DNA from: Salpingoeca rosetta
Taxonomy: Eukaryota > Protista > Choanoflagellata
Assembly (NCBI GenBank): GCA_033442325.1
Contig: JAWQFM010000020.1
Span: 290,645-354,644, forward strand
Direction of reading: 5' to 3'
Length of the DNA stretch: 64,000 nt
Position numbers and translations under genes: made by a program. Below, piece after piece: positions 677-6,854 of this stretch. The notes under the pieces were generated by a model. That model was not told the origin of the DNA, ran no database searches, and saw nothing but the letters and a program-made list of their open reading frames with translations. Position 1 is the stretch's first letter, and each line of letters begins with the position of its first letter.

Positions 677-1556
677 TGTGTCTATGTGTCTCTGTGTGTG
701 CGTGTGTGTGTGTGTGTGCGTGTGTCTATGTGTGTGTGTGTGCTCCTGATCCTGTTTAACCAACCTTCCTTTTCCCTCCTCCTTGTGTTGTTCTTGCCTG
801 TTGTTGTGTGGTTGCACATTCATTTGGTGTCAATATACTAGGTGCTTTCTGTTGTGGGTTTGCCTCTGTGCCACATCTTTGGTCGTTGCCACAGCCCTGT
901 GTACGTTGTTCTCCCCCCCACACACACACACATCCTTGTTGTGCTGTGCCTTGCTTTCGGGTTTTGGGTTTTGTTGTTGAGCGTCGTGCCGACACCATCA
1001 TTCACACACAACCGCACGTGAGCACAGGTCGGCAGGCGGGCAGGCTAATAGATTACAAGATGCATCGCGTAAGAATGAATATAAAGAACCAAAATGCACA
1101 CAAAACAAAAGGGAACGCAGTGATATGACTGCAGGCACATGGCAGGGCAGAAGCAAAGGACATGCGTGCCAGCAACGCTTGGAGGATGGCAGGTTGAAGG
1201 TTTTGAAGCAGTGCTGCGTGGAGCAACGCAGTAAACCAGATGAACAGAGCAGGGAAGGAAATCAAAGGCACCTCAATAGCAGTGATAGGAAATACAAGGG
1301 GCCGGGAAGCGTGCACGCACAACAGCACCGCAAAACACACAGCACACGAGGATGCATGCATACACACATACACACACACACAAATGCACACAAGCAAACA
1401 CACAAACGACCAATCAAATTTTAAACGACGCAGACACACTTATATACACACACTTATACACACAAATGCACACAAGCAAACACAAACAAATGCACACACA
1501 AGCAAACACAAACACAAACACAAACACAAACACAAACACAAACACAAACACTGGCT

Positions 1557-2312
1557 TCAGCGACGCGAAGGGAGCGGCTGGGGATGGTAGGCAACTGCAA
1601 TGCACCAGGTGTAGATGAAGCCAGCGGCGCGGGAAAGCCCAAACATGCTGTGCTTGTCGAGATGGGTCAGTTCTTTCCTGGCCCTTTCAAGGTTGTGCTG
1701 GGGACAGAACGTTTGTCGGGTTTCCAGCAGAATGCTGGTGAAGAAGCTCTTCTTCAACAGGTCCCTGGCACACTCGACAAATGCGCCGCTGTGGTGTTCG
1801 TGTCCATACCAGCTTCCCGATTCTCCCGAGTGATCGCTGTCACTGCTGCTGCTGCTGCTGCTGCCAGAGCTTTCGTCGGCGTCATCGCCGTCATGGTCTT
1901 CCGTGCTGCTGCTGCTGCTACGGCTGCTGTCGTTTTGCGCCTGTTCCTTTGATGCCTTGTTCTTGGTGGCGGTGTCCGTTTTGGTTGTGGTGTGTTGCTT
2001 GTGTTGCGCCTTCGTCCTCACCTGTTTCTTCTTCTTCTTCTTCTTCTTTCGCTTGGCTTTGCCGGGCGATGGCAGGCCTGGGCCCATGCCAAGGAGCAAG
2101 GTGAGGCACTTGAGTAGCGTCTGTATCTTCTCCGGCATGATGCTCATGGTTGCCAGCACCACGACGCTCTCCTGGTCCACCTGCTGTGCCAGCGCCTCCA
2201 CCTCCTGCCACACCAACAAGGCGCTGCTGTCCTCCCTTGCCTTGCCTGCCTTGAGCTGGTGGTTGTTGTCCCCTCCTCTGCCTCCTGCCTCGTTGCTCAC
2301 TTCAGCGCTCAT
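1557..2312 (-). CDS. Intronless 251-aa protein resembling an isolated dynein heavy-chain microtubule-binding domain, with a K-rich/S-D-rich insertion
   Basis: ORF from ATG to stop. Segments VEALAQQVDQESVVVLATMSIMPEKIQTLLKCLTLLLG and LSRAAGFIYTWCIAV match the spacing of dynein MTBD H1-H2 (..M..PP..V...L..I.LLLG) and H6-CC2 (S.A[AC]G....W.IA). Confidence 0.65.
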   Translation of the reverse strand: MSAEVSNEAGGRGGDNNHQLKAGKAREDSSALLVWQEVEALAQQVDQESVVVLATMSIMPEKIQTLLKCLTLLLGMGPGLPSPGKAKRKKKKKKKKQVRTKAQHKQHTTTKTDTATKNKASKEQAQNDSSRSSSSSTEDHDGDDADESSGSSSSSSSDSDHSGESGSWYGHEHHSGAFVECARDLLKKSFFTSILLETRQTFCPQHNLERARKELTHLDKHSMFGLSRAAGFIYTWCIAVAYHPQPLPSRR

Positions 2313-4993
2313 CGCTTCCTTGTGTGGTTGCGTTGGGTGTTGTTGGTGGCGTTGTTGGTGGCGTTGCTGAGTGGTGAATGATGGAAAACAGCATGAATTG
2401 CAGTAATGTCACTGTGTGGGTGTTTTTGCTGACTCAACACAATACATTTTTATGTTGTGCAATACGCCACATCACCGCTGCCCCGCTACGCACGCATGGA
2501 GTTCGTTTCGAAACCCTGTCCCGTTTTCCCCTCAAACTTAGCACCAATCGCCACCTGCACGTTGTCGATTCTGCCCCGGGAGTTGCATGTATCGCGACCA
2601 TTTGGAAGTGGCTGTTTCATTGCTTGCCAGGGGTGTCGCGTGCATGCCTGCACACAAGCACGCGCCCCATTGTCCACCCCAATAAATCTCGCCAGCTGGC
2701 TTGCCACAACAGAGCTGCAGCGCCACACATCCTGACGCAACCTTACATTCTAAGCACAATTGCTCACCGCCATCCTGCAGGTAGGTCTGCAAGTTGTTGC
2801 GCTTCGCCCACAGCCTCGCTTCCCCGCTGCTTGATTGCTCGTGCATCACGTTGCATGTCAGCCGTGCATGCTTGTTGGTTGGTGTTTCGCAGCGGTTGTG
2901 GTTGGTTGGGTTCGACCTGCATGCTTTGGTCAACCACTTCCCTACTTTCTGCCAGTCGCTTTGTTTTTCCCACACACACACTTCCCTTCGTGCTTTGTGT
3001 GCCTTGTCTTGCTTTCTTTGTTTCGCGTGCTTGCGTGCTTGCTTGCGTGCTTGCTTGCGTGCTTGCTTGGTCGTTCGTGGCAAGCCAAGCAAACAACGCC
3101 CCGCACGAAAGCAGGGGGAAAGCAGGCGAAAGCTCCAGATCGCGCAGCCGAGCGAGTGCGCGAGCGGGTGCTGCTTTTTCGTTTCCAGCTCGTTTGCCTT
3201 TATTTTTCCCCTTCTTGCTTGTTCCTGTTGTTTTGGCGTGCGTCGGACCCAACCCCAGTCTGCCACCTTTCCTCACACCAACACCCACACCCATTTGGGG
3301 CAACTAAACACTCGCACCCACGCCACTCACCCCGCTCCCACCAAACAACAACCAATCAACACCAGCGCCACCAAACACACGCACGCACGCACGAACCGAT
3401 CTTGTGCCATCGCGAAAAGGAGAGGTGGGCTCTCGTTCACCCCGCACACAAGTGCAATCCGTTTGACCCTGAAAGAGCGGCATTGTCACCACACACCCAC
3501 ACACACACACACCCACGCACACCATTCCTCTCCTCGACACGCACCACACCACATACACATACACATACACATACGCGCGCAAGCACACAAGAAGGTTGGT
3601 TGGTGCTGTCTCCTTTTCGGTGTGTAGTTTATCGCCACGGGTGTGTTTGGCGTTCGGAATGGCATCCACGCCAACGGCTCGAGCTTTTTTGTCTTTGGTC
3701 GTTGGTGGTGCGTGTCTTGGCCACTTGCTCGCTTGCTTGTTGTTCGTGCACTTGAAGTGTGTTGTTTTGTGCCGCACACACACACACACACACGAACGGC
3801 CTTGTTGCTCGCTTGCCATTTCTCGTGTTGTTCCAAAGCCATCGCACTCCACAAGACGTGAGCACACCCACAAAAGACTTTCTCTCGCGCGCCATACACA
3901 CTCCTGTATCATCCTCTCACACGCACGCACGCACACTTGCGGGTGTCACTCGCCTATTTCCCTTGTGCTTGGCCCATCATTGACCATTGCCACCGCTGCC
4001 GCCGTCGTCCAGCCTCTTCCTTTGCTTTCTCTCAATCTTGTCTTCTCCTTCTCCTGAGCAAGGGAGCAGCAGCAGCGCCAACCATTGGTCGGTCTTCCCT
4101 TTCTTGCCATGCCTTGTCAATCTCCTCTTCCCCTTCCCCCACTTCTCTCTCTCTCTCTCCTGTTTTTCGTGAACACGCACCCGCCCATTTCCTTGTTTGG
4201 CTTGGCCTGTAAGCCTGGATCCACACGCACATTGACACGAACATGGTTTCCGACTTGACCCTCAACCACACATTGCCCACAGTAGTGAGCAAGTAAGTCA
4301 CTCACCACTGTCACTTCTTCCCACTCGCTCTTTGCTGCCTCGCACATCCTACCCATTGCACTCGCACACACACACACGCACACGCACACCCACGCAGAAG
4401 CGCGCACCGCCTCTCCCTCCCTCCCTCTCTCTCTCTCTGGCTACCCGCATCACGCACGAACTCAAAAACACAAGACCAGCACGAACACGTCGCGTGACGC
4501 CTGCGTGGATTCTCGACACGAACACACGTTGCACACACCAAGCACACATCGCCACAAACAACCGGTAAACCCCCTTCCCTCCTTCTCATGCGCGTGTGCG
4601 TGCCACCGTTTGTTTCTCCATGCATGGTGGGATGGTGGCGGTGTAACGTTCAACGTTCGTTCCACCCGCCAATCACTGCTGTTTCTCATATCATCTGTGG
4701 AATCACCAACATCAACGCCATCGTCGGTGGTGGTCATTTTCATGCCCATCATTGTCGCTTCACCACCCCACATTGCTTGCTCTCTTTATTCGTCGGCCGC
4801 CACCTTCTGTTCCCCTCCTCCCTCTTTCTCGACTTGCACCACTCTTCTGTGTTCTTGCCTTCTCAACGACGCCTGCCTGCCTGCTTCTCACTCTCGTGGC
4901 AAACCAACCACCTGCCTTGCATCACCCACCCCACATCGCACTCATCATCGCAGCGCGCCCTCCCTTCTCTGCCCACAGCCCCAATACCCACTC

Positions 4994-5035
4994 TGACGTC
5001 ACAACACAGGTTTGTTCTTCATGGCTCTGACGTCA
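4994..5035. promoter_or_regulatory. Two perfect CRE palindromes (TGACGTCA)
   Basis: ctcTGACGTCA at 4994-5001 and ctcTGACGTCA at 5028-5035, about 500 bp upstream of the ATG at 5537. Confidence 0.4.
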
Positions 5036-5536
5036 GCAAACAGAATCTGTATGAGACTAGTTGCGTTCGCGCGAGTGGCGTTCACGAACGCTTCAGATGA
5101 CTTTGTCCGACGTTGCCTTTGTGCTCGACTTGTCGCAACGTCGCATTTTCCTTCGCACGACACTCTTTATTGGGGGTTGTTCTTTGATTTGACATCACCT
5201 CGCTCTCACACACGCGCGCTTGTTGCCCCATCATTTCTTTCATCGATGCCGACGTCGCTTGTCGTGCAGTCGCAACGCAAACACCAACACCTTCCAGCTC
5301 ACACTCTGGTCGCAGTTAAGCCCGCAGAGCTGACGCCTCGCAAGCCAAGACAAGCTGATCACACAAGAAGCCCCCTTCCGTTCCCAAGCGAACAGACGAC
5401 GTGAGACACAGACAGCAGGCAGCACCATTACCCAAACTGCCAACAACAGTTCCACGCAACAGCTCTTGGCATTCGAAACTTGCCGGTGAATTTTTGATCC
5501 GTCGGGACCTACCTGCCCCTCTCCAAACCCCCGTGC

Positions 5537-6854
5537 ATGTCGCGCAACAACAGCCCAGCCGCACCAACCCCGGATCAGCGCCTGCATCCAACTATGGTTC
5601 CGGGCTTTACAGCCGCGTTGCGACAGCAGCAACAACAACAACAGCAACAGCCACACCTCAATGGCCAACAACAGCAAGTTGTGCCAGAACAGCTTCTCAA
5701 CGCGCTCAGCTTCTTTCAGCAACAGCAACAGCAGCGGCAGCAGCAGCAACAGCAGCCATCCCAGTTGGGACTCCTCAGCGATGTTGCGCGTCAAGCGGGC
5801 TGGTCCGGCAACCCCTTGATGGCATATCAGCACCTCCTCGCCTCTTCTATGTCACGCAATAACGCCATTGGCCAACAACAACAACAACAACAACAACAAC
5901 AGCAACAGCAGCAGCAGCAACAACAGCCACAACATCAGCAGCAGCCATCCCCGTCCATGGCCGCAATCATGTCCAGTAGCACGCCTGGTGCCGCCACTTT
6001 GGGCCAAGGGCAACAGCAGCAGGACCGGCCCGGTGGGGCTGATCCGGCAACGGCACAACTCTGGCCATACAACCCCCTAGCTTTGCGTCAGTTTGCTGCT
6101 CAACAACACCAACAGCCTCAACAGCAGCAGCCTCAACAGCGATCCCAACAGCAGCAGCAGCCATCGCAGCAGCAGCAGCTTCAGCCCGTGCTAGCGGCGC
6201 CCACGAGCAGCAGCATGCCCCCTGCCATGCCGGCGATGCTGACTGGCCCCTACCTTCAGTCCATGTTGGGCGGCACGGCCACAAGCTACACTTACGCCAT
6301 GCCTGGCACCCCGCACCTGCCCGCAGAGGCAATGTCCTTGGGCATGTATGCCTACAGCCCTGATCAGCAGCAGCTGCTTGCCAGCATGCAGGCTATGGCT
6401 GCGGCTGCGGCTGCGGCTACCAACTCGTCACCGCAGGGTATGCCTGGCGCCCGGCGCAACAATGTCAAGGACCTCACCTCCCAGAACAGGAGCGCCAAGT
6501 ACCGCCGCCGCCGCAAGGAACTTCTTGACCAGGCAAAGAAGCAGGTGTGCCCACGGCTGCCGTGCTGGTTTGCCGTGTTTTGGTTTGGTTGCAAAAGGAC
6601 AAACTCTGTGGATGCAGAAACATGTGTGGGTGGAGAGACGCCACCCGCATGCGTGCATCGTACTTTGTGCTCCCCCCCCCCCAAAAAAAAAAAAAAACTC
6701 ACGACTGTGCTGCTGTGTGGTGACAGGCATGTGACTTGTACGACATGTGCCACATGGAAAAGAATGCACTGAGCCCGGCCGACCTCGCAACCATCGCAAA
6801 GGTGTGTGTGTGTGTGTGTGTGCGTGTGTGTGTGTGTGCGTGTGCGTGTGTGTG

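Follow-up and report, generated by a model that had tools for sequence, protein, structure and literature searches.

A short free-standing gene of Salpingoeca rosetta with a probable homologue of the dynein microtubule-binding domain

Can the microtubule-binding domain (MTBD) of dynein exist as a protein of its own? To our knowledge it is known only as the tip of a 4000-residue motor, in which its affinity is set through the stalk. The question is raised by a gene in a 64,000-nucleotide (nt) stretch of the choanoflagellate Salpingoeca rosetta (assembly GCA_033442325.1, contig JAWQFM010000020.1, positions 290,645 to 354,644 of the forward strand), called the window below, where an open reading frame (ORF) of 251 amino acids (aa) with an ATG start occupies positions 1557-2312 of the minus strand. 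An earlier inspection of the letters alone, here the sequence-only reading, had described it as a single-exon gene resembling the dynein MTBD, with no AAA ring, linker or long stalk coiled coil, and with an insert of roughly 90 aa (poly-K followed by poly-S/D) after the residues LLLG, at the position where some axonemal dyneins carry a flap. According to the analysis reported here, the probability is about 0.7 that this is a single-copy, single-exon, well-expressed gene of a small family, found so far in three choanoflagellates, which encodes a free-standing homologue of the MTBD.

The general description of the gene proved correct. A genome search gives a copy number of 1, and the identical 251-aa protein is already deposited in public protein sets, where it has no name. 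Pfam reports neither AAA, linker nor any other domain, and RNA covers the whole ORF with no splice joint. Of the stalk, whose two strands (coiled coils CC1 and CC2) enclose helices H1 to H6 of the MTBD, only remnants are left: about 15 residues precede H1, and the chain ends 15 residues past the CC2 tryptophan. The insert measures 94 aa, with a net charge of +16 in its first block and of -11 in its second, and it does lie at the flap position.

Relatives and homology of the conserved core

Relatives were sought by an exhaustive phmmer search of 1.84 billion representative sequences. According to this search, the family has a member of 189 aa in Barroeca monosierra (P0002, E value 5.9e-20) and one of 161 aa in Hartaetosiga gracilis (P0003, 2e-12), the latter marked 'complete' in its transcriptome. 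The Barroeca protein is encoded on 1.1-kb contigs that end in poly(A) and in which an in-frame stop lies 12 nt upstream of the ATG, and thus is also short and free-standing. A 670-aa candidate (P0004, 8.5e-5) was rejected as spurious, being a tandem-repeat protein that matches one 47-residue stretch only. Word-index searches with residues 165-251, with the full alignment and with the insert-free alignment returned no further members, and a scan of metagenome contigs returned no relative. As a separate observation, the ESM Atlas groups 51 'hypothetical proteins' of 156 aa (Eukaryota; Mollusca where known) in a cluster that is the best feature match of both orthologues (0.93-0.94) and also matches the S. 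rosetta protein in structure, with a template-modelling (TM) score of 0.63 by the matched row; these proteins may be animal relatives of the family.

The three proteins align well in two blocks, which correspond to residues 32-78 and 173-240 of the S. rosetta protein. The N-terminal half of the core carries the motif xP.KI..LKC..LLG and the C-terminal half S(R/K)(A/V)A..(I/V)(Y/H)TWC.A; invariant among the three sequences are P.KI..LKC..LLG, AR, ET, and TWC.A. Between the blocks lies a loop whose length differs widely: S. rosetta has about 94 aa, Barroeca about 40 aa (uncharged to acidic), and Hartaetosiga only about 4-6 aa. Because both its length and its composition vary among the orthologues, the poly-K/poly-S-D insert is a species-specific expansion and not a feature of the family.

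For comparison with dynein, the regions matching the Pfam MT family (PF12777) were cut from 11 heavy chains of the S. rosetta genome. The sequence-only reading had aligned two segments without gaps to mouse dynein segments. These segments are residues 38-75 (nt 2088-2201) and 226-239 (nt 1596-1637), and their ungapped match to the mouse sequences is indeed there, with 8/38 and 6/14 identical residues. Against the cytoplasmic-type dynein of S. rosetta itself (L010) the corresponding values are 6/38 and 6/14, a combined identity of 12/52 (p = 0.0004 by composition shuffles). The identity of the family to the S. rosetta dynein MTBDs is about 16%.

Profile comparisons bring out the relationship more clearly. 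Aligned by hhalign with the 11 S. rosetta MT regions, the family gives a probability of 78% and P = 1.7e-5 over 110 aligned columns, and the match keeps a colinear order that begins at the end of CC1, includes H1-H6 and extends into the start of CC2. Its score equals 41.9; the best of 200 column shuffles attains 25.0, and the reversed alignment 19.1. Residue and column shuffles are lenient controls that destroy helical periodicity, whereas the reversed alignment preserves it. As for a hidden Markov model (HMM) built from the 11 dynein regions, the best score belongs to the Barroeca protein (19.0 bits, E value 3e-8 for a single comparison), which matches as one domain with its insert looped out at the flap site, followed by Hartaetosiga (10.1 bits) and the S. 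rosetta core without its insert (6.7 bits). All three scores exceed every one of 1000-2000 composition shuffles. In the reverse direction, the family HMM reaches 17.3 bits against dynein L003, and when it is run on dynein translations of 1100-1350 aa that include AAA4, the stalk, and AAA5, its six best matches, from six paralogues, all fall on the MTBD core.

Two broader searches point to the same domain. In a PDB search with the family profile, an axonemal heavy chain of Chlamydomonas (8glv_Me) ranks third with an E value of 1.3, which is not significant alone; the match consists of two colinear stretches at its MTBD, residues 2774-2848 for the N-terminal half of the core and 2864-2925 for the C-terminal half. 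The same search with the S. rosetta protein alone gives nothing relevant. According to the ESM Atlas features, PF12777 clusters are the best named family for the three proteins (0.89, 0.93, and 0.93; 81/100 matches).

For the S. rosetta protein itself, no single line of evidence reaches database-wide significance. The case for homology consists of a chain, from S. rosetta to Barroeca (6e-20) and from Barroeca to the dynein MT profile (19 bits), and of the convergence of several methods on one 125-residue domain. On these grounds the conserved core is very probably a remote homologue of the dynein MTBD.

Regarding the anatomy of this core, the landmarks of the dynein domain are partly kept. In dyneins, conserved prolines in CC1 and CC2 delimit the MTBD, and a PP motif precedes H2 (PMC6629372). 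Among the three family members the CC1 proline is present only in Hartaetosiga, the chain ends just short of the CC2 proline (the invariant P217 of the dynein alignment), and of the PP motif the second P alone is invariant. The H3 tryptophan of dyneins is replaced by F, Y or V. An invariant Arg in H3 and a basic residue beside an invariant Ser in H6 are kept.

The insert follows LLLGMGP (residues 79-172), is of low complexity, and is predicted to be disordered. Its position agrees with the flap, which is located between H2 and H3 and touches the neighbouring protofilament (Lacey et al. 2019, PMC6629372): the insert shares an alignment gap with the H2-H3 flap insertion of four S. rosetta heavy chains (L005-L008). 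Pfam matches below the cut-off (BUD22, FAM60A, and others) were rejected, since all of them lie on this K/S/D low-complexity stretch, whose acidic block gives rise to those such as BUD22.

Transcript and layout of the locus

RNA evidence comes from three stranded RNA-seq runs (2026) and one contig set, mapped to window positions 1000-5600. Minus-strand RNA reaches a depth of about 150-270 across 1000-2362. The strand call takes a first mate on the plus strand as minus-strand RNA, the usual library design, and is supported by the neighbouring plus-strand gene, which shows the opposite mate orientation, as predicted. The transcript has a sharp 5' end, where 29-32 molecules stop exactly at 2362 in runs X21 and X22, and the upstream bins 2386-2693 are empty on its strand. 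The RNA reads contain no splice joint within 1000-2362. There is no ATG between 2362 and 2312, which leaves a 5' untranslated region (UTR) of about 50 nt. As for the 3' end, reads still give depth at 1000, and the start points of molecules lie at 1038 in X22 and 1028 in X23; the end probably lies near 1028-1038, with some reads extending past 1000. An independent transcript, which the sequence-only reading had proposed to look for by RNA-seq, is thus present: it starts at its own 5' end, has nothing upstream, and is unspliced. The layout of the gene is given in Table 1.

Table 1. Features of the MTBD-like gene in window coordinates
Feature	Position	Strand	Basis or remark
5' UTR	2313..2362	-	Transcript 5' end at about 2362; RNA-seq
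12-nt tandem repeat	2339-2366		Overlaps the 5' UTR
Complete coding sequence, 251 aa + stop, single exon	1557..2312	-	ORF, RNA-seq, conservation in two other choanoflagellates
N-terminal residues 1-31, variable, predicted disordered	2220..2312	-	Unconserved among the three proteins; predicted local distance difference test (pLDDT) <50
Conserved core, N-terminal half, residues 32-78 (short CC1 stub, H1, H2)	2079..2219	-	hhalign colinearity with dynein
Insert, K-rich block, residues 79-123, net +16, K run 85-96	1944..2078	-	H2-H3 'flap' position; absent from the orthologues
Insert, Ser/Asp/Glu-rich acidic block, residues 124-172, net -11	1797..1943	-	
Conserved core, C-terminal half, residues 173-240 (H3-H6, first CC2 turns)	1593..1796	-	hhalign, alignment
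C-terminal tail, residues 241-251 + stop	1557..1592	-	Alignment with dyneins
3' UTR, at least ~520 nt, CA/CAAACA microsatellites at 1362-1551	1030..1556	-	RNA-seq, repeat search

Two irregularities in the reads were traced to repeats. Six reads with loose ends at 2366 suggested an upstream exon, which was rejected: the loose-end sequence does not occur in the window but on another contig (C25:783381), which identifies the six as cross-mapped repeat reads. Antisense depth at 1924-2077 and 2232-2385 coincides with AAG/GCA/GTT low-complexity runs and was likewise taken as cross-mapping. Long (TG)n/(CA)n microsatellites lie at 3-150, 620-742, and 1362-1551, flanking the 3' UTR and inside it. Within the repeat, minority RNA variants at 1454-1457 (T>A, T>C) make up about 7-16% of the reads in two runs and about 4% in the third; they may be mis-laid reads or length alleles.

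In the neighbouring plus-strand gene (4450-6772), RNA reads support GT..AG introns at 4563-4953 and 5006-5267, and an ORF of 411 aa (5537-6772) is very rich in glutamine. The depth of this gene is about 1/10 of that of the MTBD-like gene in the same runs. At 3047, all of the few RNA reads covering the position on the main strand (4/4, 3/3, and 4/4) have T for G, whereas the DNA-like contigs have G. Very few reads cover this position, which is part of a CTTG/TGCTTGCGTGCT repeat, and they may stem from a paralogous locus.

In a genome scan, no AAA_9 match was found near the locus. Along this contig, the closest PF12777 match is found at a distance of about 645 kb, in an ordinary, intron-split dynein that has AAA_9. 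Elsewhere in the genome, two PF12777 matches fall in very long frames of 3099 aa (L014, C5:1839181-1839762) and 1886 aa (L013, C34:318024-318770); an AAA_9 match is absent in one and weak in the other, and both look like divergent dynein-like genes. As for tubulins, the genome has two beta-tubulin genes of 445 aa that run uninterrupted from MRE to the acidic tail (L020:1495-2829 and L021:1495-2829, both on the plus strand), one alpha-tubulin gene of 451 aa in a single uninterrupted frame, also from MRE to the acidic tail (L022:1495-2847, plus strand), and a further beta-tubulin copy (L023) that is interrupted after 193 aa.

Possible function and competing explanations

What might a domain of this kind do without its motor? 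In dynein, CC1 slides against CC2 and thereby moves H1, which switches the affinity for the microtubule (PMC6629372). With no stalk there would be no registry-controlled switching, and we propose that the protein is held in a fixed affinity state. It would then serve as a microtubule-associated protein of fixed affinity and no motor activity, or compete with dynein for its site. The +16 lysine block that S. rosetta has at the flap position could contribute electrostatic contacts with the acidic tails of tubulin, and the -11 serine-rich block next to it may mask the lysine block or be regulated by phosphorylation. We give somewhat less than an even chance to continued docking of the helical bundle on tubulin or on the microtubule lattice. 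Slightly more tentative is the complete proposal of a natural 'MTBD-only' protein that binds the dynein site on tubulin and serves as a motorless competitor or place-holder on microtubules of the flagellum or cytoplasm, with the charged flap-position loop as a tuning element in S. rosetta. If true, it would be the first known case of an MTBD working outside a dynein heavy chain.

A number of results weigh against this picture, some of them against homology and others against canonical microtubule binding. At the level of sequence, Pfam gives no PF12777 row for any of the three family proteins even at E <= 10, and accordingly none of them attains the gathering score of that family (24 bits); a six-frame PF12777 scan of the genome misses the MTBD-like locus.

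Structure prediction, with models of low confidence, points both ways. The AlphaFold2 (AF2) model of S. rosetta, made from the single sequence, has a pLDDT of 49, and the Hartaetosiga model from three sequences has 58 with a predicted TM score of 0.48; both are of low confidence. The helices of the S. rosetta model (residues 16-43, 47-55, 60-75, then the insert, 173-186, 188-198, 205-216, and 223-242) and those of the Hartaetosiga model nevertheless come in an order that fits CC1-H1..H6-CC2 of the MTBD. The first four PDB matches reported by Foldseek are all dynein MTBDs (6rzb, 6rza, 3err, and 6kio), with E values of only 0.16-1.1 and TM of about 0.25. VIA-align gives low Z scores of 4.6 to 3err_A (93 residues, root-mean-square deviation 3.7 A) and 4.4 to 8i3j (92 residues), and in an unbiased VIA search over 48,161 chains the MTBD appears at rank 44 among many helical hairpins, which does not discriminate. 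An Atlas fold search with the AF2 model yields only weak, unrelated rows; the model of the S. rosetta protein that the Atlas itself provides matches an MT cluster, with a TM of 0.63 when normalised by the matched row and of 0.48 when normalised by the query.

As for microtubule binding, where dyneins have two basic H1 positions (K..K/R), the family has Q/E/G at one and A/N/T at the other, and the net charge of the core ranges from 0 to +2, compared with +3 to +6 in 9/11 dynein MTBD cores. The lysine block is unconserved in the orthologues, and its K run resembles a nuclear localisation signal equally well.

The points on binding bear above all on the main alternative, in which the core descends from an MTBD but no longer binds microtubules, its fold having been re-used for another partner, such as a dynein light chain normally found on an MTBD or a nuclear partner. 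The K run of S. rosetta would then be a nuclear localisation signal and the acidic Ser run a set of kinase sites. Besides the loss of the basic H1 positions in all three proteins and the nearly neutral core, this explanation draws on family-specific invariants that are absent from dyneins (LKC in H2, ET in H4, and TWC in CC2) and suggest a new constraint. A K run followed by an acidic Ser run is also typical of nuclear and nucleolar proteins, and the weak BUD22-like Pfam matches reflect this composition. However, no partner is known, basic residues are kept around H3 (the invariant Arg) and next to the H6 Ser, and an insert that is not conserved cannot define the function of the family. Taken together, we consider such re-use unlikely, though by no means far-fetched.

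The points on sequence and structure bear on a different possibility, namely that there is no common descent at all and that a lineage-specific orphan aligns its amphipathic helices with the MTBD by chance. An identity of about 16% and the missing Pfam match would be expected of such an orphan, the fold searches do not discriminate between helical bundles, and the shuffles, which destroy helical periodicity, are lenient. Against chance, however, different methods independently reach one domain of about 125 residues out of thousands of families, all six helices match in colinear order and leave the variable insert where a flap would naturally lie, and the family profile picks the MTBD, and not the stalk or the AAA lids, in six dynein paralogues. 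The reversed alignment, in which periodicity is preserved, scores 19.1 versus 41.9. A chance resemblance is accordingly quite improbable.

Finally, the ORF might be a piece of a dynein heavy-chain gene (an exon or a fragment) or a recent retrocopy (pseudogene) of one, as its lack of introns in an intron-containing neighbourhood might suggest; that it is an exon of a larger dynein gene is among the findings that the sequence-only reading had named as overturning it. This is scarcely credible: the transcript is bounded, starting at a 5' end of its own and showing no splice to other exons, the ORF is intact, the short complete protein is conserved in three genera, its divergence from all S. rosetta dyneins is too great for a recent copy, and there are no dynein domains nearby.

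Origin, significance and comparison with known systems

The lack of introns had also been read as a hint of retroposition or domain escape. Of these, recent retroposition is not supported, because the gene is common to three genera and is only about 16% identical to any S. rosetta dynein; in addition, no genomic poly(A) tract, the hallmark of a retrocopy, was found after its 3' end. Intron-lessness of a coding sequence of 756 nt is in itself weak evidence for retroposition. An old retroposition or domain escape is possible.

No description of a free-standing dynein MTBD protein was found in the literature searched. The domain is known, and the MTBD alone as a conserved gene of its own appears to be a new architecture. 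An expressed and conserved free-standing copy would show that the MTBD can live as an independent protein, and would be a small natural reagent for asking what the MTBD does without registry control. It may also be a regulator, without motor function, of the tracks used by dynein, and this in an organism that belongs to the closest living relatives of animals and is open to gene editing. A likely fold is also assigned to an orphan gene that Pfam leaves blank.

The system closest to the family is the dynein MTBD itself (PF12777; 3ERR, 6RZB, 6KIO, and 8I3J), with which it shares the helix order from the end of CC1 through H1, H2, and H3-H6 to the start of CC2. Common to both are the P that opens H2, the hydrophobic H2 ending in LLG, the F/L pattern in H4, and S-x-A-A....W..A at the junction of H6 and CC2. 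Dynein, however, has an antiparallel stalk of about 100 residues, an AAA+ ring, and a linker, and the family lacks all three. The insert, in turn, occupies the same H2-H3 loop site as the flap of axonemal dynein MTBDs (DNAH7 and Chlamydomonas dynein-c; PMC6629372). The dynein flap, however, is a beta-hairpin of 13-19 residues, whereas the loop of the family has 4-94 residues, is of low complexity and predicted disordered, and is not conserved between species.

Engineered fusions with seryl-tRNA synthetase (SRS-MTBD) demonstrate that an excised MTBD can fold and bind microtubules at a fixed stalk registry (PMC6629372). Those constructs keep 12 stalk heptads on the synthetase base, whereas the natural protein has stubs only. 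DNAHX, a subfamily of non-motile heavy chains (PMC11785096), is likewise a dynein derivative, said to have lost motility. It is described as still a full heavy chain, whereas the present family consists of the MTBD alone.
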